Source of the DNA: Trichoplax adhaerens | Taxonomy: Eukaryota > Animalia > Placozoa | Length of the DNA stretch: 64,000 nt | Direction: 5' to 3' | Assembly (NCBI RefSeq): GCF_000150275.1 | Contig: NW_002060952.1 | Span: 456,482-520,481, forward strand | Part shown: positions 7,331 to 63,000 of the stretch, in pieces | How positions within the stretch are numbered: the first letter of the stretch is position 1 | Layout: each line of letters begins with the position of its first letter | The notes under the pieces: generated by a model | Told to the model about the DNA's origin: nothing | What the model saw: the letters and a program-made list of their open reading frames with translations, nothing else | The model's database searches: none | Translations under genes and position numbers: made by a program

Positions 7331-7524
7331 GAATTTCGTTTTCAATACTTTAACTGGGAAAAAATGGAACGAAATCGAACGTGCAAATACAGTAGTTTAT
7401 AGTTTGTACTACTGTGCTGTATATACCGATAGAGCAAAGAATTTTATTTCTACTGTACTTTTACTAAAATATCTGATACACAATAACATCGCTGTACTGT
7501 ACGCCTGGACTATAGCGACTACGG

Positions 7525-8200
7525 AATGGGCACAGTCACTGTACAGTTACTACAGTACAGTACTGTACACCAGAAATGTACAGTGTACAGTCCATAACGT
7601 AACAGTACGGATTGTACTGTAGTACTGTATGTACTGTACCAATGCTATGGAATGTAACGACTCTTAATCAGTATTTGCTTATTAACATCACTGGTTGATG
7701 TAACAACTCTTAATTAGTATTCGCTTATTAAGATCACTAGTAAAGTGACAGTACAGTACTGTACTGTACGTTACAATTTTGACTGAGGGACTGTAAAAAA
7801 AATGAGGGCGAAATTGTGAAAGTGACTTGGCAGTTGGCAGTGACTAAATATGGGTCCAGCAGTCCAGTCGTCTGGTACTGTCGTGGTGATCTGGTACAAA
7901 CATGACAAGATCAGTGTACTGTAGACACTACTAATGGGCACAGTAACAGTACTGTACAGTCCATAACGTAACAGTACGGATTGTACTGTAGTACTGTAAT
8001 TACAGTACTGTACAGTACTGTACAATTTTGACTGAGGGACTGTAAAAAACAAGAGGGTGAAAGTCAGGTCTACAGTAGGTGAAACTGTGAAAGTGACTTG
8101 GCAGTGACTGAATATGGGTCGAGTAGTCCAGTCGTCTGGTACTGCAGTGGTTATCTGGTATAAACAGGAACACATCAGTGGATCAGTACTGCACACTGTA
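7525..8200. repeat. Diverged two-copy tandem duplication, with an internal 47-bp dimer at about 7651-7740
   Basis: aatgggcacag...tccataacgtaacagtacggattgtactgtagtactgta at 7525 and 7933. tacaattttgactgagggactgtaaaaaa...agtccagtcgtctggtactg at about 7772 and 8021. Confidence 0.85.
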
Positions 8201-8546
8201 AAGTAACCCCATAGGTGATCATCTTGGTACTGAAGAATCTCTGTCAGAACAGACTTTACTTATACCAGAAGTTATATATATAGAATAGCTATATGAGGAC
8301 CATAGGGAAGAACCACCATGGATAGGACTTCCAAGTGTTAGCAAGGCTTTACTGTCGATTCTGCAGACACCCTAAGATAATCTGCCGTCAAGGGTAGAAA
8401 AACCGAAAGTTATTCTACAGTACTGTACTGTAGTAGAACCTACGGTACTGTACGCTCGTTCTGCTATACTGTACAGTACAGTACTGTACTGTACTGAGAC
8501 AGTGACATTCGACCTGGTTCAATTCAAAGCGACTTTGAAGTCGTCA

Positions 8547-30324: not shown

Positions 30325-30540
30325 CGTATACTGCACAGTACAGTACTGTAAAGTTGATTTCTACTGTACAGTACACTGCACGGTATAGTAAAGTTCATTT
30401 CTAATGTACTGTAGAGTAAAGACTGTAAAGTTCATTTCTACTCTACAGTACACTGCACAGTACTGTACAGTACAGTATAGTACTGTAAAGTTCATTTCTA
30501 CTGTACAGTACAGTACACTGTAGAGTACAGTACGTACACT
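30325..30540. repeat. CAGTA-rich tandem repeat (about 4 copies of core aaagttcatttcta) in the putative promoter of SLC38A9 paralog 2
   Basis: Core at about 30350, 30390, 30427 and 30487, separated by variable numbers of tacag/ctgta pentamers. Confidence 0.8.
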
Positions 30541-30749
30541 GGATGATCTGTCGTGTTTGGTACACATGGTCGTGTGCACGCCATGCATGTAGCGCATGTG
30601 GGTTCACTCAACGTTCGGGTCAGCTTTCGCAAAGGTCAACCCACTGGCTTATTAACCGTGACACCATACCAGACCCTATCCCTCAATCACTGTTCAATAC
30701 ACAAGATAGCCAGCCATTGGTTATTGCTATAGTAACCACAGTTCATCTC

Positions 30750-37202: not shown

Positions 37203-40200
37203 TTATTTTTTCTTTCCTTTCTTGTTGCTAATTTTCTGTATGAGTTTCTTACCAGAAAATTTCCCAGATAATGGACTCTTTTTCTTTTTACGATTATTTC
37301 CATTATCAATAAATTCTTGATCATCTTCAGACTGGCTGTCTTGTGATGGCATTCGGTAACGACTCTCTTTAGCAGGTTGTCCACCTTCGTCATCCTGATT
37401 CCAAATACAACACATAAAGAATGAATTGGAAAACGTCATATACGCAATCACATACGTACCAAGGTACAAACGGGTAGAACTATTAACAGTTGTTTTACTA
37501 TGAGAAAAGATACTTAAATACGTCAATTTTGGTACTATGATTTAATCATTACGATAAGATCAATGCAAACATGTCGTTCATGTCGTAAAGAACTTACTTT
37601 AGCTGGATATTCTGATTTATCGTTTTCTTTTCCTTCATCAGCGGAATTTTCGATTAATTTAACAAAATTAGATGGAACTAAGCCGCGTTTATCATTTAAT
37701 TCGCCCTATAAGTAAGAGTAAACAATACATCTTACTAACCTCTCATAATGATTATAAATATGTTATGGAAATAAATTACACAGAAGGACTCTTTCGGCTA
37801 AGTGTAATCAGAGTATAACAATTTTTGAGATAAAAATGTCAATGCTATATCTTTCTTAAAAGAAGATAGCTATTAATTTACCATAAAATAGCCATCTTCG
37901 TCCATATTTCCTAGGATACGAATAGTATCGCCAGCATGGAATGTAAGTTCCATCTAAAATCAAGAAAATTGCAGATTTTTTGAGTTACGCGTAGTTATTA
38001 CCTAACTAAACAGTATTAAGATTTTTAAATGAAAATTATAAAAAATTAATTCATTTATAAATTATTATTCAATGATTTAGCATTCGTATCCGGAAATTGA
38101 TGTAAAATTTAATATTTTTACCTCGGAGTCCGCATTCGGTGACGAAACATACGGATCGTAATCATATAAAGCAACAGCGTAAGATTTTACTTCCTGCGTC
38201 CTCGCTGATGTAAACGAAACATTATCTTCATCGAATGATGATGATGAAGAATCATCGCTGGCGCTTTGATCGTTACCAGCACCCGCTGCTTGTTCTTCAT
38301 TTAATTGCACATCATTCGTCATCGTAACTGATATATTCGAAAGATAGTGAAATAAGTGTAATCCGTTACATTGCCAAACATTACTATATATTGCTACTCA
38401 CTTATATTAAACATGTAACACGCCCGTAACATATGCACGGAAACATGGTGTTTAAATAACGATCATGAAATATAAACTAATAGAAACACTCACATTCCAC
38501 ATCAACGGTTGGTATATCGCTATCTGCAATAAATTCTTGATCTTTGTCTTTAGACAAAGATTGACTCGGGTCAGGGTCTGTATTTTCTGTTCCGGTTACT
38601 TGTGTTTCAGGATACTGTATTTCGCACACCATGTTGCAAGGTACATAGCCAGTGCGATTGTTTAGTTCACCTTTATAAAAGCCATCGCCGTCTTTATCAC
38701 CATAAATCTATAAAGCAAACGAAAAAGCATGAAGTAATAATTTAAAGAGAATATTTAATAAATTGACAAACAGGGCGATACAGTGTGAGATTACACTACA
38801 TACGGGTATAGCACCATGTATAAAACGCATTCTTTGTTTATACTTTAATACCTTAATAATATCGCCTTGTTTAAACGGCAGTTCTTCCTCAGCAACATCT
38901 AAAGGATTAGGTGACATGACTTCAGGGTCGTAGTTATACAGTGCGACGAAAAGGCGGACTTTATTTTTAGCTTGGGCTTCTTCCATACTTTCTGATTCAT
39001 CTTCATTGCCCTCAGGTATATCTATCAGTGCTGTTGGTGTAAAAGGTTGTGTAGTTTCTTCAAAGTTGTCAAATTGCTCGTCGTCAAACGCAAACTCTGA
39101 TTCATCCGTTAAAGACACATCATTATCTTTTACATTTAAGTTTTCAAGAGTCTTACTAATAGAATCTTCACTATTTGTAGCACTTAAGGGTTTATGTTTG
39201 GCAATATGAACTGATTTAGAAGACACATTGGTGTCATGTATTTTATTGTTACTTAGACTTTCGGCATCAGTAGGTGTAACAATAGTTTTCTTCTGATCAT
39301 TGTTTTTATTTGCATCTTTCTGAAGATCATTTCTAATTACTGCTACAGCTTCAGTTGTGGAAGGCACTTTTGAAGTTGTTTTATTATCGTCGATCTGGCG
39401 TACATTGGTTTTCTCTGTATCAATTTGTTGTGAGGTCACTTCTTGATAATTTCTCGTAGAAGCGTTGACCAATTTCGATTGGATATCAGTATCTATAGAT
39501 TTGTTATATTCAATGAGGTTCCGCTTACTTTGCTGATCCTTCTGAGTAGAAAGATTTGATTGTGCCACTTTAACCTCATTGGTTTCATTTTCACTATTAT
39601 TATTACTACTATCGCTACTACTACTACTACTACTGCTAGTGCTATTTCTATTGATACTATTTTTCAGATAAGTGACTACATTTTTTGCTTTGATCTTAGA
39701 ATCATCACTCTTTGTATCAGAGATAACAGTTTTAGCTACTACCGGAGAACTGTCTTCACTATTGACGCGAATAGAGTTAATAGCGATCGTATCTTCGATA
39801 TCATTACTTTGAAATTTTTTACTATCGCTGTTGATATCTTTTGCTTTGCTTTTAGTATTGTCTAAATGAGGTTTTCTAGCGCTAGAAAATGCACTCTTCT
39901 TGCTATTACCATCCAGCTTATCAACTTTAATTTTCGGAATCTTTTCTTCTAAACCTTCGGCACCTAACTCTTTTACCTTACTAGTAGACGACGCTTTTCG
40001 AGTATGCCTTGGTTTAGGTTCATCACTGTCACTGTCTGAGCTTGATAAGTAAAGCTCGCTTGGTTTATGTTTAGTTAAATGTTTATCCTTTTTAGGTCTA
40101 GTAGTTTTAAGAGAATTTGTAGGTGTAGATATTGGTGAAGATGTAACTCCGTCAGAATTTTTGTCTAGTTTCTTTATTTTGCCTAATACCAACTCCATAG

Positions 40201-43200
40201 ATGTTTCTTTTCCTTTAACAACTTTCGAACCTGTTATATTAATAGCTTCACGGTTTGCTAACCCAAGCTGGCTTTCATGTGTTGATGATTCATCATCGTT
40301 CTCACTTTGAATAATTGGTGTCACGCAAGGTGTTGGTTTAACGGGCTTTGGCGCCACTAGATTGCTAGAATTACCAGGTGGTGCTTCGATAGGCTTAAAT
40401 AGTTCGACATGACGTTCATCAGATTCACTTTGAGATTCAAGATCTGAATCTGAACCACCTTGCATATTGCCAGTGACTGTTTTGGTCTTTTTTGACCGGC
40501 TAGGGCCAGTGTTGGCGACCAGATAGGAACTGGTATCTCCTTCCGTACTATTCTCTAGTGGTATTTCCGTTGTAGGTGATTTCTTTTGATATTCATGATT
40601 TTGCTTTTTCAGATATTTCATAGCCATGCCTAATGATGATTTACCCGCATCAATTGATTGGTCAGTATTTTCCGTCGTTCCTGCGGAAAAACGACGATTA
40701 TAATGGGCCTTACGTATCTCCATGGTATTATTAAGCCCATTAGTATCGATATACGATGAATGACGACGAGAATCACTATTCTTTACTGGCAACAAATCGC
40801 TAATACCATGGTGATCGTCAGCATTAATGTCTTGTCTATCTTTGCCTTCGTTAAATTTTGACTTTGTACGACCATCTTGAAATATTTTTACTTGATAAAT
40901 TTTCTCACGAATATCATTAAATTTATTATTAGGTGTAGTCTTAAACTTGGACATCGACTTGTCATCTTTTCCTGAGTGGGTGCTAGTATTCACCCATAGC
41001 GGCGAAGATGATTCATTCTTTTTTGCTGCTGCTCGCTTTTGCCAAATTTTAGCTAGTACCGATGCAGTAACATTAGCTGAGGCAATCGATCTCCTCCTAT
41101 TGACGTCATCCTCTAATTTCGTCTTTCTTAAATCCGAGATATCATCGCTGTATTTACGTTCAGTTTTATTATGACTCAATAATTTTAACACTCGTGCAGT
41201 TGTTTCTTTCCATTTTGCATTTGTGATAGAATCCATAGATGCACGAGGGCTCCTATCACCTTTTCCACTGATACTAGTTGATGATCTATCTGGACGATTA
41301 TTCAATTGTTGAAAACCTATTTCACCTTTTTCGTTAGAACGCGACCTACTTTTATCAGACAACGGTGACAGAAGTTCTTTTTCACCATTGTAGCGAACTT
41401 TTAAATCAGACATTAAAGTATTGATTAACTCATTACTTATGATAGTTTCAGCTGACGATCGCGACTCTCCCCGAATCGATTGTGTACGTACTGTGACTGA
41501 GTATGGTGAAGACCCATGTAGTATCGATTCGACGACTTTTGGACTAATCTCTAAATAATCAGCAGTAGGATCCGGCGTAGTTAAAATCTTTCTGCCATTA
41601 ATGTAAATAGTGTAACCGGTAACCAATGTACCGTTCGATTTTCCATTAGCACTTATTGTCACGGGTAACCATGTAATATATAATGATCCTTTTTCGCTTC
41701 CAGTATCCAATCTGACGCTAGCTGGGCTATCCGGAATGCCTGAAGGTAATAAATTTACAATATAAAACTACATTGTAGGATGTCAATGTTAACTGTATGT
41801 ATCGTACTGGAACAATAGCTAGCATCAGGACTAAATAACTTAAACATTTATTGACTACCTTGTTGATCAGTTTGAAATTGAATTTCAGAATATGTAATTT
41901 TATCCAAGTTATACATTTTGGCGTGCTCATCTGGTAATTGGCCAGTTGCCATTATCTTAACAGTAACAGTACTAGTAGGTTCCAAGCCGGTCAGATTGCA
42001 TTGATTAGTACCAGGCGGCACTTGTTGAAATTTATCATTGTTGACAAAGATTGTATGTGAAAAGTTACTATCACTTGGCATCCAAGCAATTACTGCGGTT
42101 GTGGCCGAGTACGATAAAACTTTTATTTGCGAAGGAGCGATCGACAAATCTATAGATATGCATAATGTAATAATAGGAAGTCCCAAAATACAATTAAGAA
42201 TAACACATAAGTGATAATAATAGTTAAAGATTTACGCGTATAAAATATTCACCCTTACCTTTTCCTATTAATACCGTAGCCTGAGCGTCTGAAGAATGAC
42301 CAATAGGGGTTATTGTTCGGACTGATAACCTTGTAACCTAATTAAGAGTTAATACAAAATAATAGTTAAATATTATCGTTACAATTGTGGTGCTACTTTA
42401 AAATGTAATATCAACAAACGATTATTTAATCGAATTATGAACATAAAATTTGAAGAATTAATAATATAATGAGCAATAGTGCGGTACATCAGTCAACACT
42501 AGCCAAAAAATCATTCGTCATAATTCAAATAAGACTATTGCATACAGTAATATCTGCCGCCAAAATGCTAAATAGTGTAGATAAATGTATCCCTCTTATG
42601 AATTACGAATAATACACTAGCCTATTAAGTTTATTGCTGTACGATCGGAACTACTCCTACATAGGATATTGTATCTGGCTGAAAACTATTAGTATGTCTT
42701 AGATAAATAAGAGAAAATTTTATAAGAATGGTAAAAGGATGTACATGATTATTATCGAGTCCTCCAACTAGGGCCTTCATTTTCTCATTTTTGTTGATTT
42801 CTGATCGTAACGACCCATTAACATAAACCGCATATGCAGTAACTTTATCTGGTGGCAAATCAGCAGCTTGCCATCGAAGAAGTACACTATCTATAAAATG
42901 GCGCTCAATCCTAACGTTTATTGGAGAAGCTGAAACGAAAGTACGTAATATAAATGTCATTATACTTATCACTTAGGCATACGCTGACGCTTAAATTTTT
43001 TGCACCTTTTTACTTAAAGAAATATTTCTATCTAACTACATCACAAACCTATAGCTGGATCACCAGTTTGTAATTGGTCTAACTTATTTTCAGGATTGTT
43101 TATTGATACAAGCGATGAATTAGTTTCACTGAGTGCTTCAAGCCCAGTACCATATGTTGATCCCGCTGTGATATAGGTTATATAAGCGCAAGTAGGGCAT

Positions 43201-46200: not shown

Positions 46201-48386
46201 GATATACAAATTTTACTAGATATATTTAGGGCTATGATCTAGGACTATGGTATTTCAGATAGTAAATTCTTACGCAACTACATCGATAATTATTTTTGCC
46301 TTACAATTATAAATATTAATTTTTTCAATACTGTACATATCACTTACTATATTTTTACTCCCTTGGTGAATATTGCTAGAACCTACTTCTGGTCCATTAG
46401 CAGGTTGATTAACCCTTAATTTGTTTATCTCATCGTCTTTCTTCTTTAGTTCTTCTTTCAGTTGCATGCATTGCTGAAAGTAGCCGTCATCTCCATTTTT
46501 AGAAATTGTTTCTTGTAAATCATTCGCAATTTGAACCAGTTTTGAGTTACGTATTTTTAGCCTAGCTAGTTTGTCTTCCAAGTAATTTTGACGATTGTGA
46601 TTTGATGATCCAAGCTGTCGCTTCTGTAAGAAGAGATAAGATCATCGAGATTTACTTTATTAATTAATCAATCTTGTGTACATTGTCCGGTTGTTCCATA
46701 GCATACGTATAACATTTCAATCTATCCTAAATTGGAATAACAAGCTGCTGTAAGGTGTATTTACTTGATTACAACTTACCAAGGATGACATTTCTTTGGC
46801 TAAATATTCACATCGACTTTCTAAATGGCTTACATTAGAATTTAATTCAGTATTCTTCTGGAGCAATAACCTCTCACGGTCATCAAATAATCGTTTACTC
46901 TGTAGAGAAACAACAATCAATGCTTATTAACTACAAATAGTGCAAGCTACGTACTGTAGATGTTGATCAAAGCGAGAAGGGCTTCCTTTAAAAATAAAGG
47001 ATACGAACAAAAGTTGTTTAAAATTTTTTTTAGAATACTTGTATGTAACAATTACACGCTTATTTCACTTTATTCAACCCCAAAATACTCTTTTTTATGA
47101 ATGCAATATTGTGCGTATCACGTATCAGCAAAAAATGAGAGAAGGCATGCAAGAAAATCTTATTTTAACGTCATTACTGAATTTGGTAAAGTCAGGAATG
47201 AGTCCGCTTTATCGAAACCTATGACTCTGATTGACATGAGGCTTATAAGAGTATAAAACCACTCGATGGAATAACTTGTTGACATACGAAAAAGTTGGAT
47301 AATATTTTCACTTCGAGTTACAGTGGTTGACAATGTGGCTGGTAAATATTCGATAAAATTTTGAACATTTAAAGACTGTGAAAGATAATGCATATCCACA
47401 ATAAGCATGCATTCAATAGAGAACGTCAAGATATAGCAAGAAAAGAAATAAAAGTCATTTAACTAGCAGCACTGGATATAACTTACAATAAATAAATGTA
47501 CCAATTTGACTACTCTTATGTACGAGTATTTAAGCAATGATACAAGGTCGACTGTCTTAAAATAACGAATAATACTCGGTATTCTGTTATAGCAACTTAC
47601 AGTCCATGCTACTACTGATGATGAATCATGTGAATTTGGACTTGTTAATGTATCTATCGATGTCCTTGTATCAATAGGATGAAGCTTGATCGTCGAATGT
47701 ACGGCTTGATACTGCAATGTTTCCAACTCTAATTTAAAATTGATCAGTTCGTCACCTAATTTGCTTTTTTTATCATCGTCATCATTATTATCTCGATTCC
47801 TTTCATAATTATGTGAATGGGGATAAGGAAATGGCCGCATAGTATGATCGCTACCTTTTTCATGACTAAAATAGGATAAATAATCAAACTGATCATCATT
47901 TGTTGTACTACGCAATGCCAGTTGATCTCCCTGGATATTATCCATGCAATCTTTGTTGAGGTGATGATGATTAATGTTACTGTTGATTTGAAAACGTTGG
48001 TTTGATAATGGATGGATTATAACATGGTCATGTAATAACTGTTTACTATTTGTTGTACTCCATTGACTACGATGACAGTTACTATGATAATGAAGATTTT
48101 TTCCAACCCTGCCTTCAGTACAACTAAGTTGTGGAGTAACCATGTTCTGATTCTTATCGGTGATTTTTTGGTTACTTTCACTTTGTTGCAAAGCTAATGA
48201 TGGTAATACAAGTATTGAATTGAGTTGATTATCGTAGTTCATTAATCTGATATCAGCAATCGATGCTGATATCCTCGTATCATTGGCAAATACTGTTGTC
48301 GTCGTAGAACAAGTGGTGGAATTTACTGTCACCAAGGTATAGTATCCATTTGTTGGAACATCATTGAACCACTGGGTTTGTGACAT
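37203..48386 (-). CDS. RIMBP2: RIM-binding protein (RIMBP/TSPOAP1 family): N-terminal coiled coil, SH3, 3x FN3, long disordered linker, 2x SH3
   Basis: Family-diagnostic SH3 domains: FVAKYDYNPMETSPNKQPEFELPF; RLFVALYNYDPEVMSPNPLDVAEEELPFKQGDIIK-IYGDKDGDGFY; AVALYDYDPYVSSPNADSE-MELTF..GNMDEDGYFMGELNDKRGLVPSNF. FN3 repeats include AVIAWMPSDSNFSH and LYITWLPVTISANGKSNGTLVTGY. Coiled-coil exons include LARLKIRNSKLVQIANDLQE and ELETIIRQLTKEKLQL. The first coding exon (47600-48386) and the exact start are less certain. Confidence 0.93.
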
Positions 48387-48972: not shown

Positions 48973-49480
48973 TGAAATGTGTTGCTAATATTGAATCAGT
49001 CAATTTGGGTAAGACCATCGACATTGGAAGAAAACTACAATCTTACTCTTTCTAGCCGCTACTTTGTCATGACCCATGTTCAAAGTATTTCCGATCAACA
49101 TTCATTTGCCTTCTACGTCCGTCAATACCGGAGAAAAGATTCTTACACAGCTTCAACTCAGTACAATTTAAAATGTTGGGGAAGAAAATGATAGGATACA
49201 ATTCAATTTTTTTCCTCTCCTTTTTCTTAATGAAGTTGCAGGCGTTTCTTAGGTTACCGAAATGACGAATGAACAGTCATCTTGGCACATGTGTCATGCA
49301 GTCGCGCGTCAATCTTGGACAGTACACCGTACAGTCGAGCGTCAACGTGACTGAGATGACCCGTCCAAAGTTTCAAACGATATGTAGTGTGACATCGTGG
49401 GCGTTTCGGAAGAGTCAACCTGAAGACTACAATACGCTTAGAATACCTTGCCTAAACGATTGAAAGGCTCCTAGTAAGTT

Positions 49481-50110
49481 CTCTCGGTTACTGAGGCAAT
49501 GGGTTAGCAGTTGGGTAGCAATTTCTCTCGGTTACTAAGGCAATGGGTTAGCAGTTAGGTAGCAATTTCTCTCGGTTACCGAGGCAATTGGTTAGCAGTT
49601 GGATAGCAATTTCACTCGGATACCGAGGCAATGGGTTAGCAGTTAGGTAGCAATTTCACTCGGTTAGCAGTTGGGTAGCAATTTCAATATAATGCAATCG
49701 GTTAGCAGTTGGATAGCAATTTCTCTCGGTTACTAAGGCAATTGGCTAGCAATTTCTCTCGGTTACCGAGGCAATGGGTTAGCAGTTAGGTAGCAATTTC
49801 TCTCGGTTACCGAGGCAATTGGTTAGCAGTTGGATAGCAATTTCACTCGGATACCGAGGCAATGGGTTAGCAGTTAGGTAGCAATTTCACTCGGTTAGCA
49901 GTTGGGTAGCAATTTCAATATAATGCAATCGGTTAGCAGTTGGATAGCAATTTCTCTCGGTTACCGAGGCAATGGGTTAGCAGTTAGGTAGCAATTTCAC
50001 TCGGTTAGCAGTTGGGTAGCAATTTTACTCGGTTACTGAGGCAATCGGTTAGCAGTTGGATAGCAATTTCTCTCGGTTACTGAGGCAATGGGTTAGCAGT
50101 TGGGTAGCAA
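49481..50110. repeat. 44-bp minisatellite with a 231-bp higher-order duplication, upstream of RIM-BP
   Basis: Unit ctctcggttacYRaggcaatgggttagcagttRggtagcaattt. The rare variant caatataatgcaatc recurs at 49685 and 49916. Confidence 0.95.
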
Positions 50111-58359: not shown

Positions 58360-58820
58360 CCACAGTCTTGTAGTATTCTACAGTAGTTCACTATTGGAAT
58401 GAACAATAAAAACCCAATCAGCGCTGTTTTCATCTAGGAATGCGGCTGTGTCATGAGAGTACAGTGTACAGTGTACAGTATGGGGAAGGCCTACAGTAAA
58501 TGTACTGTGATCTGCTACTGTAGTACTCCGATTTTTCTTTTACGGAGACACAGGAATGCGGCTGCGTGATGGCAGTGCTGTACTGGACAGTTATGTGTCG
58601 CTTACAGTACTGTACAGTATCGTACTCTACTATGATCTTACACTACCCAGATTTTCTTTTACTGAGACGCTATTCAAACGCTCCGTTAAAACTGTTTCAA
58701 AAGCGGCGGCTGGCTATACTGTACGTACTGCGCAGTACGCGAAATCCTGGTGACGTACAGTACAGTATCAGGGACTACTGGAAAGAAGAGAAAAGGACAC
58801 GACACCTCCGAAAGCTGCAG
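58360..58820 (+). promoter_or_regulatory. Promoter-like block (CAGTA-rich, CCAAT box at about 58414, TGACGT at about 58751)
   Basis: Dense tacag/ctgta runs, aacccaatcagc, ggtgacgtac and locally higher CpG content. Confidence 0.45.
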
Positions 58821-58823
58821 AAA

Positions 58824-58881
58824 ATGTCTACATGTGTAGGCCGACTGTTTTTGCTGGTCATTTCAACTGCACTGACCATCG
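58824..58881 (+). CDS. Candidate alternative or orphan first coding exon, hydrophobic and signal-peptide-like (MSTCVGRLFLLVISTALTI-G)
   Basis: AAAATG start, 19 codons plus 1 nt, then donor G|GTAATC (phase 1). It lies downstream of a promoter-like CAGTA-rich block. Confidence 0.45.
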
Positions 58882-58916
58882 GTAATCGTATGCTATACTG
58901 TACTGTATCCTGCTCC

Positions 58917-59881
58917 AAATTCCCTGCCAGGTTGCTTTGCATACTGTAGTACAGATGATTGCATTGAGCTAACTTGCGATAGTTTTAGTATTGTTGTAGC
59001 TCAATCGCTGTCAAGTAAGGTTCCCATTGGAACCAATTTCAATAGCTCTTAGTATAGAGAAAATGGATAGGCAAATTCCCTGCTAGGTTGGTTTGCATAC
59101 TTTAGTCTGTAGTACAGATGATTGCATTGAGCTAACTGACGATAGTTTTAGTATTGTTGAAGCTCAATCGCCGTCAAGGAAGGTTCCCATTGGAACCAAT
59201 TTCAATAGCTCATAGTATAGAGAAAATGGATAGGCAAATTCCCTGCTAGGTTGGTTTGCATACTGTAGTACAGATGGTTGCATTGAGCTAACTGACGATA
59301 GTTTTAGTATTGTTGAAGGCTTGAAGCTCAATCGCCGTCAAGGAAGGTTCCCACTGGAACCAATTTCAATAGCTCATAGTATAGAGAAAATGGATAGGCA
59401 AATTCCCTGCCAGGTTGGTTTGCATACTGTAGTACAAATGATTGCATTGAGCTAACTGACGATAGTTTTAGTATTCTTGAAGCTCAATCGCCGTCAAGGA
59501 AGGTTCCCATTAGAACCAATTTCAATAGCTCTTAGTATAGAGAAAATGGATAGGCAAATTCCCTGCTAGGTTGGTTTGCATACTGTAGTACAGATGATTG
59601 CATTGAGCTAACTTACGATAGTTTTAGTATTGTTGAAGCTCAATCGCCGTCAAGGAAGGTTCCCATTAGAACCAATTTCAATAGCTCTTAGTATAGAGAA
59701 AATGGATAGGCAAATTCCCTGCCAGGTTGGTTTGCATACTGTACAGTGTACAGTAGTACAGATGATTGCATTGAGCTAACTTACAGTACGATAGTTTTAG
59801 TATTGTTGAAGCTCAATCGATGTCAAGGAAGGTTCCCATTAGAACCAATTTCAACAGCTCTTAGTATAGAGAAAATGGATG
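58917..59881. repeat. Six-copy ~156-bp tandem repeat upstream of CDIPT exon 1
   Basis: Units start with aaattccctgc at 58917, 59073, 59236, 59400, 59556 and 59712. They are near-identical apart from small insertions and substitutions. Confidence 0.97.
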
Positions 59882-59882
59882 G

Positions 59883-60068
59883 GACAGTACAGTACAGTAG
59901 TTTGACCCAAGTCTTACAGTATGAGACGGTTTGTACTGTACACTGTACACTGTACACAACAAAGTACAGTACCACGTACTGTAGACTACAGTACAGTACT
60001 GTAATAAAAGCGCTGGAGTGGATCCCAAGGTTGCAGTCCCTGAGCCTGTGTGTCCGCCGAAGATCGCT
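59883..60068 (+). promoter_or_regulatory. Putative CDIPT core promoter and 5' leader, CAGTA/TACTG-rich
   Basis: acagtacagtacagtag and tgtactgtacactgtacactgtacac lie directly upstream of the ATG at 60069. Confidence 0.55.
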
Positions 60069-63000
60069 ATGGGAGAAAATATATTTCTATTTCTGCCCAA
60101 TTTAATCGGTAAGTCAGCATCTCTTCCCAAAATTAGACACATTGAGACCTTTTACCTGTATTTTGATGTGTATTATAGGCTCACCATAGTTTGACCGTGA
60201 CTAGAAAACTCTTATATCACCAGATTAAAGTACTGGGTAGACTCCGCTATCAGATAGTTTATTGATGGAAGTGACTGTATAGTGTGTTACTTCCAGCACA
60301 GTACTGCACGTAGTCTGGTGCGCATCAACTTATCGTAGTATTAACTCACATTATAATTAATTGCAATTCAGCGTGATGTAAATTGAAATTTGGAGATTAA
60401 TAATCATCGCCTTTGATGATCTTATTTTCATTCCAATCATTATAATGAAATTTTTAACATGACCTCTAAATGCCTATCACTAGACTGATATTGCAAAGCG
60501 CTGCGATCATAATGATAATGAGATTATTTATTGAAAGGGGAGAACGACTTCGTCTTGGATTTGACTTGGCTGGAATTGGACAGTAAAGTGTCGGCATACA
60601 AGTTATTACGATACTAGCAAATTACACATACTAAAAAATGAGCAAATGTTACAATGGTAGATATTTGAACAAGTAAAAGTCGTACTACAGACTAGAGCCA
60701 GCTATATCATAGCTGGAGATGGGTATGATTGCACTGATACTAAATCATCATCGTTTCATTCATGGAGACCCATGTCTTGTACTGTAGACGACTCATATTG
60801 CATCTCGGTTGTCTATTAATTATACGAGAATAGAAATTGTTTCCCGATGGAAATGACGCAAGTACTTCCTGGTCTTATCATATTGCTAGGGAACAGATAG
60901 ATTATAATCAATGCTTAAGTAACATCTGATTAAGTAAGCGATCTATATTACTGGCGGACAGTTTCCTATTGCAATTGAAGGCTTCATATCAATCTCTGGC
61001 TATCCATACAGATACTAAGAGCTTTAGGATGGCTAAATTAACATTGCTATAAGCAAGGTTACATGATCATGCTTGTTACGATCGCTAGTTATCAAAAGAT
61101 GAGTCCGTCAAAGATTCATCATTGATGATACTCTTTAAATTGACAACACTACATTCGCATACAACTGAAGGCTTTATTGTCTTAGAGTCAAAACTCCTCT
61201 AACAAATCCATCCTTTGTTAAAAATTTCCCTAATTATACTGTACAGCACGTACTGTACCCTTTAGTCGAATGTTGTTCTATGCTAGACCATCAATTTATT
61301 AATTATAATTATCGTATTCATCTTCTTGATCATATAAGAAGCATCAAACCAATTTTCAACTCATGACAACTTGTACTCGTCGTAGCAAAGTAGGACATCG
61401 TTGCAGTACGCGCAATAAACAGCATTGATAGCAATTCTGCTTCCGCATAAGGTTGTATCTGTCAACAATATAAAGTCTTATCATGAATAAATAGATGTAG
61501 TTTCCAATCATCAACTCTTGCCTTTGAAATTCTAATTCGCTTATATTTTAAACCCATTACTTTACTTGATGATTTTTAGACCATGTTGAAGTTTATTGTC
61601 AAAGAGATAATCCTCATGTACACACGTACTATGCATAACGAATTCAATTTACTATGCAACTTATTCAATATAAAATTTAATTGTGGTATAGATTAATTTT
61701 ATTCTTTCTTGGTCGCTATTCTAGGGTACGCAAGGGTTATACTAGCTTGTGCGGCATTCTACTACATGCCTACAAACCATCTACTATGTGGTGGACTATA
61801 TATTCTCAGTCAATTATTGGATGCATTTGACGGTTATGCAGCACGATATCTGAATCAATGTAAGATGAACAGACGATAAAATGAAAATTTTTACAACAAT
61901 TAATTTTACATTTTCTCTCTACGCCTACAAGAGTCTGTTTGTGACAATACTTAATTTTGTAGCTTATTCATATATAGTTTAACCTTGATCGAAATCGTAT
62001 CTACTTTATATCACTCCTTTTCTATGAGCTTGTACCTTACTCCCAATAGTAACAATCTATTTATTATCGCCATTGCGTTCTAATGAAACATTGCCCACAG
62101 ATGAATTATCGACCGTAGTATGCATTTCAATCTTTACACTTAATGTCGCACGAATTAGGCTTGTATCATTGTTAAGTATTAATAATGTGCTATGCTGTGG
62201 CATATTAGTTAATCGGATTACTTAAAAGTTGTGATCATTCTTCACGTTTGTACATTACAGGTACCAAATTTGGCGCTGTACTTGATATGCTGACAGATAG
62301 GTACGCCCTACTACACAGTATACAGTATGCTATTATATAGAACGAATAGGATTACTACATAGAAACTACCCTATGTAAAGGATGATAATTATCACTGTAT
62401 TGCTTACTCATATACACGTATCTCTCAATGGGCCAATAAAGATATAGTAGATATTTCTTATGACAAGTTATTTTCTTTGTCAGATGTTGCACTGTTTGCT
62501 TAATGGTGGTATTGGCAAAATTTTACGAAGACTATTACTTGATGTTTCAATTCTTGATTGCCCTTGATATTACCAGTCATTGGTTTCATATGTACAGGTA
62601 ACATACGTAATGCAATATCCAATGTAGTTCTGTAGGAGGGACAACGATCGAATTCTTACTAAATGAACCTCCTATTATAATTATTTAATTGATCCCACAC
62701 TGCTGCATACATATTATTAAACACTACTAACTGTAATATGTTCTCTACTTACAGTTCCTTCCTTAAAGGCAGTAGCAGTCATAAACATATCGATTTATCT
62801 GGAAATCCTTTGTTGAGATTATATTATACATCCAGAGTAAGTAAATTTCTGTGTATTTAAAGCACTTTAATATTTGAATACATTGATTCTAATCTAATTT
62901 TTTTTCAATAGCCTGTTTTATTCTTTATGTGTGCTGGAAACGAGTTTTTCTTCGCGATGTTGTATCTACTCCACTTTGAAGAAGGGCCCGCAGGTAAAAG

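Follow-up and report, generated by a model that had tools for sequence, protein, structure and literature searches.

The last unit of a tandem array upstream of a CDIPT-like gene in Trichoplax adhaerens carries two insertions, of 12 and 5 bp, that place CAGTA at TA dinucleotides. The array lies in a 64,000-nucleotide stretch of contig NW_002060952.1 (referred to below as the window), and its six units provide an internal alignment against which the insertions can be read. Both insertions are real, derived, anchored at TA, and fixed in content. Their 5-bp steps have the form of the footprint left by excision of a Tc1/mariner-type cut-and-paste transposon, and we regard it as an evenly balanced proposition that they are such excision scars, with slippage adding to the tracts. 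Elements with the appropriate ends are present in the genome, with copies in DNA rich in the same motif, and the 156-bp unit of the array derives from one of them, a miniature transposon of low copy number that duplicates its TA target and has a type of end that would leave the scar.

Throughout the text, heptamer denotes TACAGTA or TACTGTA (TACWGTA), and pentamer denotes CAGTA or CTGTA (CWGTA). The analysis covered the window and loci fetched from elsewhere in the genome (labelled L0xx), which together amount to 160 kb; the assembly searched comprised 105.6 Mb in 1414 pieces.

Structure of the array and polarity of the unit 6 insertions

The array and the features on which the comparison rests are the following, with positions given in the window.

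58916-59883, plus strand: tandem array, 6.0 copies of a 156-bp unit, with units starting at 58916, 59072, 59235, 59399, 59555, and 59711; unit 2 measures 163 bp, unit 3 164 bp, and unit 6 173 bp
59711-59883, plus strand: unit 6, the final unit, adjoining the promoter-proximal heptamer tract
59744-59755 (slidable to 59741), plus strand: 12-bp insertion CAGTGTACAGTA in unit 6, at the TA after ..gcatactg
59784-59788 (equally TACAG at 59782-59786), plus strand: 5-bp insertion CAGTA in unit 6, at a plain TA (aactTA-CAGTA-cgatag), giving TACAGTA
59100-59106, plus strand: private 7-bp insertion of unit 2, with ctgtagt duplicated imperfectly in tandem at the position that carries the 12-bp insertion in unit 6, and with no new heptamer
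about 59312-59319, plus strand: private 8-bp insertion of unit 3, in which ttgaag(c) is imperfectly duplicated and no motif arises
58600-58912: upstream heptamer tracts, stopping 4 bp short of unit 1
59888-60003: promoter-proximal tract made up of TACAGTA/TACTGTA words together with 7-bp CACTGTA units, immediately 3' of unit 6

At the first site, units 1, 3, 4, and 5 read catactgtagtaca, and unit 6 is identical to them except for the 12 added bases (CAGTGTACAGTA). At the second site, unit 5 reads aacttacgatag, units 2-4 read aactGacgatag, and unit 1 reads aacttGcgatag, so the TA at this site is confined to the lineage of units 5 and 6, its place being taken by TG or GA in units 1-4. Here, aactTAcgatag became aactTACAGTAcgatag, a gain of 5 bp over an empty TA. 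The letters reported for both sites in the initial annotation, which proposed that the motif had been inserted de novo into unit 6, proved exact. No ACAGT lies within 20 bp of the second site in the ancestral unit, and the five inserted bases were not copied from their neighbours.

The 12-bp insertion, previously treated as a single event, is better read as a compound one. Insertion of CAGTA at the TA followed by a 7-bp tandem duplication of TGTACAG yields the observed string exactly, taking TA to TA CAGTG TA CAGTA; the alternative split consists of a 7-bp CAGTGTA and a 5-bp CAGTA. The two private insertions in units 2 and 3, which the initial annotation did not mention, are both imperfect copies of neighbouring bases, and the one in unit 2 is ordinary slippage.

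Could unit 6 instead preserve the ancestral state, the other units stemming from a copy in which the 12 and 5 bases had been deleted, or could it be an error of assembly? Microhomology of the two TAs in TACAGTA could have allowed a 5-bp deletion between them, and the terminal units of an array are the hardest to assemble. Nevertheless, substitution differences among the units amount to 1.3-7.4%, and units 1-5, which diverge from one another by up to 6.4%, all lack both insertions; unit 6 nests beside unit 5 on common substitutions (3.8% divergence, its nearest relative); and two separate exact deletions before amplification would be less parsimonious. Moreover, two diverged copies of the same transposon family, at C1413:4.79 Mb and C1409:2.26 Mb, serve as outgroups: both align over the second site without the five bases and show nothing resembling the twelve bases at the first. 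Given these outgroup copies and the absence of the extra bases from five of the six units, both changes are, by this alignment, derived insertions in unit 6 and not losses elsewhere, as had been proposed, and we consider an ancestral unit 6 or an assembly error highly improbable. With the sister units and the outgroup copies standing as the empty allele, unit 6 shows the change from TA to TA, three bases, and TA that an excision footprint entails.

A miniature transposon behind the 156-bp unit

The family to which these outgroup copies belong gave 76 matches at about 20 places in the genome. Its ends read TA-CAGTGGTG... and TA-CAGTGGTGTGCATCGAATT, with inverted repeats of about 60-70 bp beginning CAGTG; its members measure about 115-300 bp, are 84-91% alike, and have no coding capacity. 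Among 17 ends surveyed, TA precedes 11 and TA-CAG is found at nine, while the complete copies (L016, L046, L049, and L053) are flanked by TA on both sides with no longer duplication. Terminal inverted repeats, TA duplication, dispersed copies, and lack of coding sequence together characterize a Tc1/mariner-type miniature inverted-repeat element; TA duplication with ends of this kind is the Tc1/mariner signature, by comparison with the ends of Tc1 and Tc3. The CAG found in the insertions thus corresponds to the termini (CAG...CTG) of an element resident in the genome, and this miniature transposon is described here for the first time as an element of the donor type.

The copies are closely associated with the heptamer. 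At about six of 13 ends, the flanking TA doubles as the last TA of a heptamer, and the loci of the miniature transposon hold 7.1 heptamers per kb, as against 1.8 in quasi-random loci (Mann-Whitney p = 1e-4). The quasi-random sample consisted of loci from a 15-mer scan for the family's ends with 2 mismatches, whose matches were mostly noise (131 versus 82 in the control). The copies themselves also carry pentamers gained at internal TA sites. Several family loci are tandem arrays of half-elements or of single inverted repeats. One of these, in L025 (G000:C1412:703893-706957, about positions 1000-1640 of the locus), is made of tandem units of about 70 bp, each a single inverted repeat of the miniature transposon, with 0 to 3 CTGTA pentamers between ..acacagta and catcgaatt.

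The 156-bp unit shares 67-71% identity with family members elsewhere over about 130-270 bp. The part of the unit homologous to the inverted-repeat end of the element is exemplified by the junction of units 5 and 6.

59650-59743, plus strand: segment homologous to the inverted-repeat end of the element, clear through ..gagaaaatgga..aattc..tgc

The homology is firm to about 25 bases from the TA of the 12-bp insertion and plausible beyond. The stretch running to ..catactg-TA probably corresponds to the element terminus ..caccactg-TA, and the TA of the 12-bp insertion is thus probably the junction of an element terminus and its target TA.

Some copies have variant ends. In L060 and L063 (about locus position 1500, minus strand), they end in TA-CGGTGG instead of TA-CAGTGG, and TACGGTA/TACCGTA is the next most enriched word of the form TA-N3-TA after the heptamer (2.9-fold; 55 versus 19 expected in 160 kb); this hints at scars that vary with the ends of the element.

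Heptamer excess and insertions at other loci

At a GC content of 34%, the commonest 6- to 8-mers were ACAGT-type words. The word TA-CAG/CTG-TA occurs 187 times in the window, where about 14 occurrences are expected (13-fold), and is the only strongly enriched word of the form TA-N3-TA; elsewhere, the enrichment was 8-fold in the quasi-random loci and 33-fold in the transposon loci. The word is thus more frequent than chance would give. When isolated ACAGT cores are set against a composition-matched control word, their excess falls in the class with T before and A after the core (122 of 399). The flanks of isolated heptamers otherwise resemble generic TA flanks, with no extended motif, and their central base is A in 60 cases and T in 53. 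The tracts reach five units at most in the window and six in the fetched loci, and those of the window cluster at 7-8.7, 17, 30.3, and 58.4-60 kb.

Indels between paralogous stretches (n = 143) peak at 5 bp, with 24 cases, compared with four at 4 bp and five at 6 bp, and include further classes at 10 and 15 bp. This set was built from BLAST alignments, which are noisy within motif tracts, and 16 of the 24 five-base gaps escaped clean classification; of the eight clean 5-bp events, five are also exact tandem duplications inside tracts. Births of the motif at plain TA sites were found in L049 (15 bp within ctaTAgag), L048 (5 bp at gaatTAgatc, plus one later substitution), and L029 (at position 2321). 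Another set of such differences lies within the window.

30350-30545, plus strand: four short units differing at TA by 15 bp (CTGTA CAGTA CAGTA, 30463-30477), by 5 bp (about 30483-30487), and by 5 bp (in the unit starting at 30487)

The same type of event thus separates other paralogous copies, which bears out the proposal that a sequence-specific process adds CAGTA or CTGTA and can seed motif tracts. The related statement that other repeated copies differ mainly by pentamers holds for the units at 30.3 kb but only loosely for the blocks at 7.5 and 7.9 kb, which are separated mainly by larger, complex indels of about 37 and 125 bp. The latter form an imperfect duplication of about 400 bp (7520-8215), in which the first copy holds the extra stretch of about 125 bp (about 7630-7745); this stretch contains an internal tandem duplication of about 42 bp and has heptamer tracts at both borders.

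The simplest account of these data would be ordinary slippage of a pentanucleotide microsatellite followed by point mutations. The (ACAGT)n repeat has been described as the major microsatellite of T. adhaerens, 54% of its occurrences being upstream of a gene at a distance of no more than 1 kb (Wang et al. 2010, Biol Direct 5:18, PMC2871265), and the tracts of the window, being tandem, abundant, and situated upstream of genes, are that repeat. Slippage also agrees with the five tandem duplications among the clean 5-bp events and with the 7-bp duplications in units 2 and 6. Across the 160 kb, neighbouring tract units have the same central base in 93 cases and different ones in 60 (18 and 17 in the window alone), an excess which shows that slippage contributes to tract growth too. 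Pure slippage, in contrast, would yield nearly all units in the same orientation, and the mixed orientation counts against it: the central base is switched in 39% of neighbouring units, and each such switch would require an extra A/T transversion exactly at the centre. Furthermore, the second insertion of unit 6 and those in L048 and L049 arose without a pre-existing repeat and are not copies of adjacent bases, while the first insertion of unit 6 places CAGTA beside CTGTA, of opposite central base. As an explanation of everything, slippage is therefore improbable; as a contributor to the growth of existing tracts, it is part of the reading that we favour.

A further enriched word, TACAGTGTA, occurs in 61 copies, 20-fold over expectation in the window, and includes the first five bases of the miniature transposon. 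The 15-mer consisting of two 7-bp TGTACAG units recurs at eight sites of the window (7235, 7577, 8733, 8740, 58465, 59740, 59935, and 59942). Together with the absence of the blunt-join product TACAGCTGTA, these observations may be due to slippage by 7 bp at the TGTACA palindrome, or else to another class of scar in which five terminal bases are kept.

Proposed excision scarring and competing mechanisms

In the mechanism that we favour, an element with CAG...CTG ends would enter a TA and duplicate it, and its later excision with cuts staggered by 3 bases, followed by end-joining, would leave TACAGTA or TACTGTA. In the elementary event, TA would become TA-C(A/T)G-TA and so gain 5 bp; short tracts would subsequently lengthen, in part by slippage. 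An element would once have occupied the two TAs of unit 6 and then left; open promoter chromatin would be the preferred target, and the scars would later have been put to use in promoters or insulators. Sleeping Beauty leaves two canonical footprints, TACAGTA and TACTGTA, each made of the duplicated TAs and three terminal bases, the central one of which can be resolved as A or T (bioRxiv 10.1101/659086). The likeness extends to the 7-bp word itself, the anchoring at TA, the gain of 5 bp over an empty TA, and the central A or T. The present case differs in that neither an occupying element nor an active transposase is seen, and in that the words pile up at the 5' ends of genes far above the number of elements. 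Two other kinds of transposon footprint were considered and rejected: hairpin-type footprints (hAT, Mutator, Transib), with their palindromic additions, since the second insertion does not repeat its flank in inverted form, and a 5-bp target duplication retained after excision (Transib-like), since the five inserted bases differ from the neighbouring five.

Several findings weigh against excision scars. No transposase fit to cut such ends was found by profile searches with PF13358, PF01498, PF01359, and PF10551 and by inverted-repeat scans of the matches. Extrapolation from 1.8-2.9 heptamers per kb gives about 2-3 x 10^5 heptamers in the genome as against about 20 family copies, a gap of roughly four orders of magnitude. 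Family copies are 84-91% alike while unit 6 is only 3.8% from unit 5, so the unit 6 events postdate the last amplification of the family that can still be seen. A single 173-bp unit with 15 TA sites received two or three events, and the 69 TA sites of units 1-5 received none, even though unit 1 likewise adjoins a heptamer tract. To our knowledge, promoter targeting is not a property of Tc1/mariner elements. The same-orientation excess signals additional slippage, and possible templates for both insertions lie within 200 bp. The blunt-join product is missing, as noted above, and other non-canonical footprints show no enrichment, TACATA/TATGTA standing at 0.7-fold, TACTA/TAGTA at 1.1-fold, and TACGTA alone at 1.9-fold, whereas non-canonical footprints account for more than half of the Sleeping Beauty events in cell culture (bioRxiv 10.1101/659086). 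Finally, transposable elements were reported to make up 0.13% of the genome, none of them active (Wang et al. 2010, PMC2871265).

A rival explanation is templated repair, in which a break or stalled fork near a tract would be mended by polymerase theta-type end joining, template switching, or short-patch gene conversion, with neighbouring tracts copied through TA, TAC, or GTA microhomology. Such repair needs no transposase and is consistent with the lack of active elements. In addition, the derived 15-mer spanning the 12-bp insertion is found in reverse complement 190 bp downstream (59935 and 59942), the second site has a match, cttacagta, at 59913 and a tacag template 40 bp upstream, and unit 6 adjoins the densest tract. 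The 15-mer is common, with eight copies in the window and 30 in 160 kb, and a nearby match to it is not significant. Templated repair predicts varied lengths and arbitrary content, whereas the observed quanta are of 5 bp and always CWGTA at TA, with either central base; births occurred in motif-free context inside transposon copies, far from any copied word; and no co-converted flanking substitutions were seen in unit 6. The initial annotation favoured template switching or templated addition. Neither is required, and since elements with TA-CAGTG ends exist in the genome and make up the array itself, neither is the best fit: TA-anchored 5-bp additions with fixed content and either central base are the published footprint. 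Templated repair is accordingly an unlikely explanation, and excision scarring combined with slippage is more likely than template switching.

A different kind of explanation invokes selection and no special mechanism, the heptamer being a transcription-factor or insulator site, produced by ordinary mutations, whose site-making alleles are kept near promoters. The published concentration of ACAGT repeats upstream of genes favours it, as does a sequence-to-contact-map model that singled out ACAGT repeats in T. adhaerens; the TA anchoring of isolated cores is also expected if the bound word is a 7-mer. Selection supplies no mutations, and a 7-mer would arise much more readily by point change of near-matches than by an exact 5-bp insertion, yet insertions are what the paralogs show. 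Heptamers also build up inside and beside transposon copies, and the flanks of isolated heptamers show no extended motif. Selection as the whole explanation is therefore quite unlikely, less so than pure slippage and more so than templated repair.

As to where the process acts, a preference for transcription start sites had been suggested. One array cannot show such a preference, and unit 1 adjoins a tract without having received an insertion; a regional effect, on the other hand, finds support in a control array within the window.

49472-50110, plus strand: minisatellite upstream of a RIM-BP-like gene, holding 56 TA sites but lacking heptamers and showing no pentamer-type indel from unit to unit

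This control array and the published figure of 54% fit a process limited to certain promoter regions, which one array cannot establish.

Transposase-like genes

Among the profile searches, PF13358 (DDE_3) gave one match, a single-copy open reading frame (ORF) of 358 amino acids without inverted repeats, and PF01498 gave four Tc3-type helix-turn-helix (HTH) remnants, two of which are HTH-only ORFs. PF01359 (mariner) gave no match; the same search was also silent in its control genomes, so absence is not implied. A fuzzy search for the family's end in the loci of these matches found none flanked by it, and a sequence search of the 358-aa ORF against solved structures (PDB) gave no match.

The 358-aa ORF (L001:895-1971; G000:C1409, about 3.5376-3.5387 Mb) is intact, with HTH_28 and DDE_3 domains. 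On inspection by eye, its first catalytic aspartate is seemingly replaced (..IAEISF..), while the second aspartate and the glutamate of NPAE are kept, about 35 residues apart; the ORF may be a domesticated Tc1/IS630-like transposase. The two HTH-only ORFs, L009:1474-2019 (minus strand, 181 aa) and L011:1498-1893 (minus strand, 131 aa), have paired-like HTH domains (HTH_32, HTH_Tnp_Tc3_2) and no DDE domain, and are candidate transposase-derived DNA-binding proteins.

The CDIPT-like gene and other genes of the window

The gene downstream of the array was recognized from the following exons.

60070-60110, plus strand: first coding exon of the CDIPT-like gene, MGENIFLFLPNLIG, followed by a gt splice donor
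61709-61876, plus strand: exon of the CDIPT-like gene with the CDP-alcohol phosphatidyltransferase motif (PF01066, 26.5 bits versus a cut-off of 22, this exon searched alone)

The promoter-proximal tract at 59888-60003 lies 65-180 bp upstream of the ATG at 60070, and with the PF01066 exon downstream, the description of unit 6 as the unit nearest the CDIPT promoter is reasonable. Elsewhere in the window, a 1000-aa open frame (38708-41710, minus strand), the start of which matches the immunoglobulin-like domain of RIMBP2 (PF25523, 83 bits), represents the RIM-BP-like gene, and a 307-aa ORF at 47463-48386 (minus strand) had no Pfam match.

Comparison with known systems and implications

The tracts described here share with the (ACAGT)n repeat of Wang et al. 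the pentamer, the genome size class, the poverty in transposable elements, and the association with upstream regions of genes. In that paper, the repeat is a microsatellite and a possible transcription-factor site with no origin given, while here it is anchored at TA, mixed in orientation, and born by insertion of 5 bp at a plain TA. The same authors mention a single family of about 20 copies (PMC2871265), which may be the miniature transposon of this study. In its TA target duplication, CAGTG inverted repeats, short size, and low copy number, the family resembles Stowaway-like miniature inverted-repeat elements; it differs from them in that no autonomous partner was found and in the tandem arrays of half-elements or single repeats at several loci.

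Template-switch mutations and polymerase-theta templated insertions likewise add a few bases beside microhomology, and candidate templates can lie close by in one orientation or the other. Those processes copy whatever is nearby, in variable lengths; the insertions in T. adhaerens have constant content and length and occur only at TA. The internal eliminated sequences (IESs) of Paramecium are TA-bounded and very numerous, have an end consensus resembling Tc1/mariner termini, and lie in a genome without matching active transposons; a domesticated piggyBac transposase removes them with precision in the somatic nucleus, leaving a single TA. The TA and the CAG-like end are alike in the two cases, but a single TA is left there and a heptamer here.

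Another short, promoter-associated placozoan motif tied to the inverted repeats of DNA transposons is the loop-anchor motif, which lies in 'Mutator' inverted repeats (Kim et al. 2025, Nature, PMC12221973). We rejected the identification of that motif with the heptamer: a later paper names the transposon-borne placozoan motif as ACGG repeats and lists ACAGT separately. The element described here also differs in having TA duplications and is not of the Mutator type. A search of the literature found no published proposal of an excision-scar origin for the ACAGT repeat.

The insertions in unit 6 may be a clue to the birth of the published promoter-linked ACAGT repeats. More tentatively, and at somewhat less than even confidence, we propose that the promoter-island code of placozoans, that is, the ACAGT/TACWGTA tracts at the starts of housekeeping genes, was written largely by excision scars. 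Elements with TA-CAG ends would have repeatedly entered and left open promoter DNA, adding 5 bp at each visit, in a lineage since almost purged of transposons; the scars would still slip and would have been co-opted as promoter or insulator sequence. The process would have been active after the array formed, and perhaps still is, through a transposase not recognised in the assembly. The ACAGT repeat, known since 2010, has had no origin assigned to it and now also figures in models of placozoan chromatin folding. If the proposal is true, an early-branching animal would owe a whole class of its promoter-proximal sequence, as a by-product, to transposon traffic, the birth of a microsatellite, from zero to one unit, would in this rare instance have a defined enzymatic cause, and a genome described as almost devoid of transposons would hold a dense fossil record of past transposon activity.

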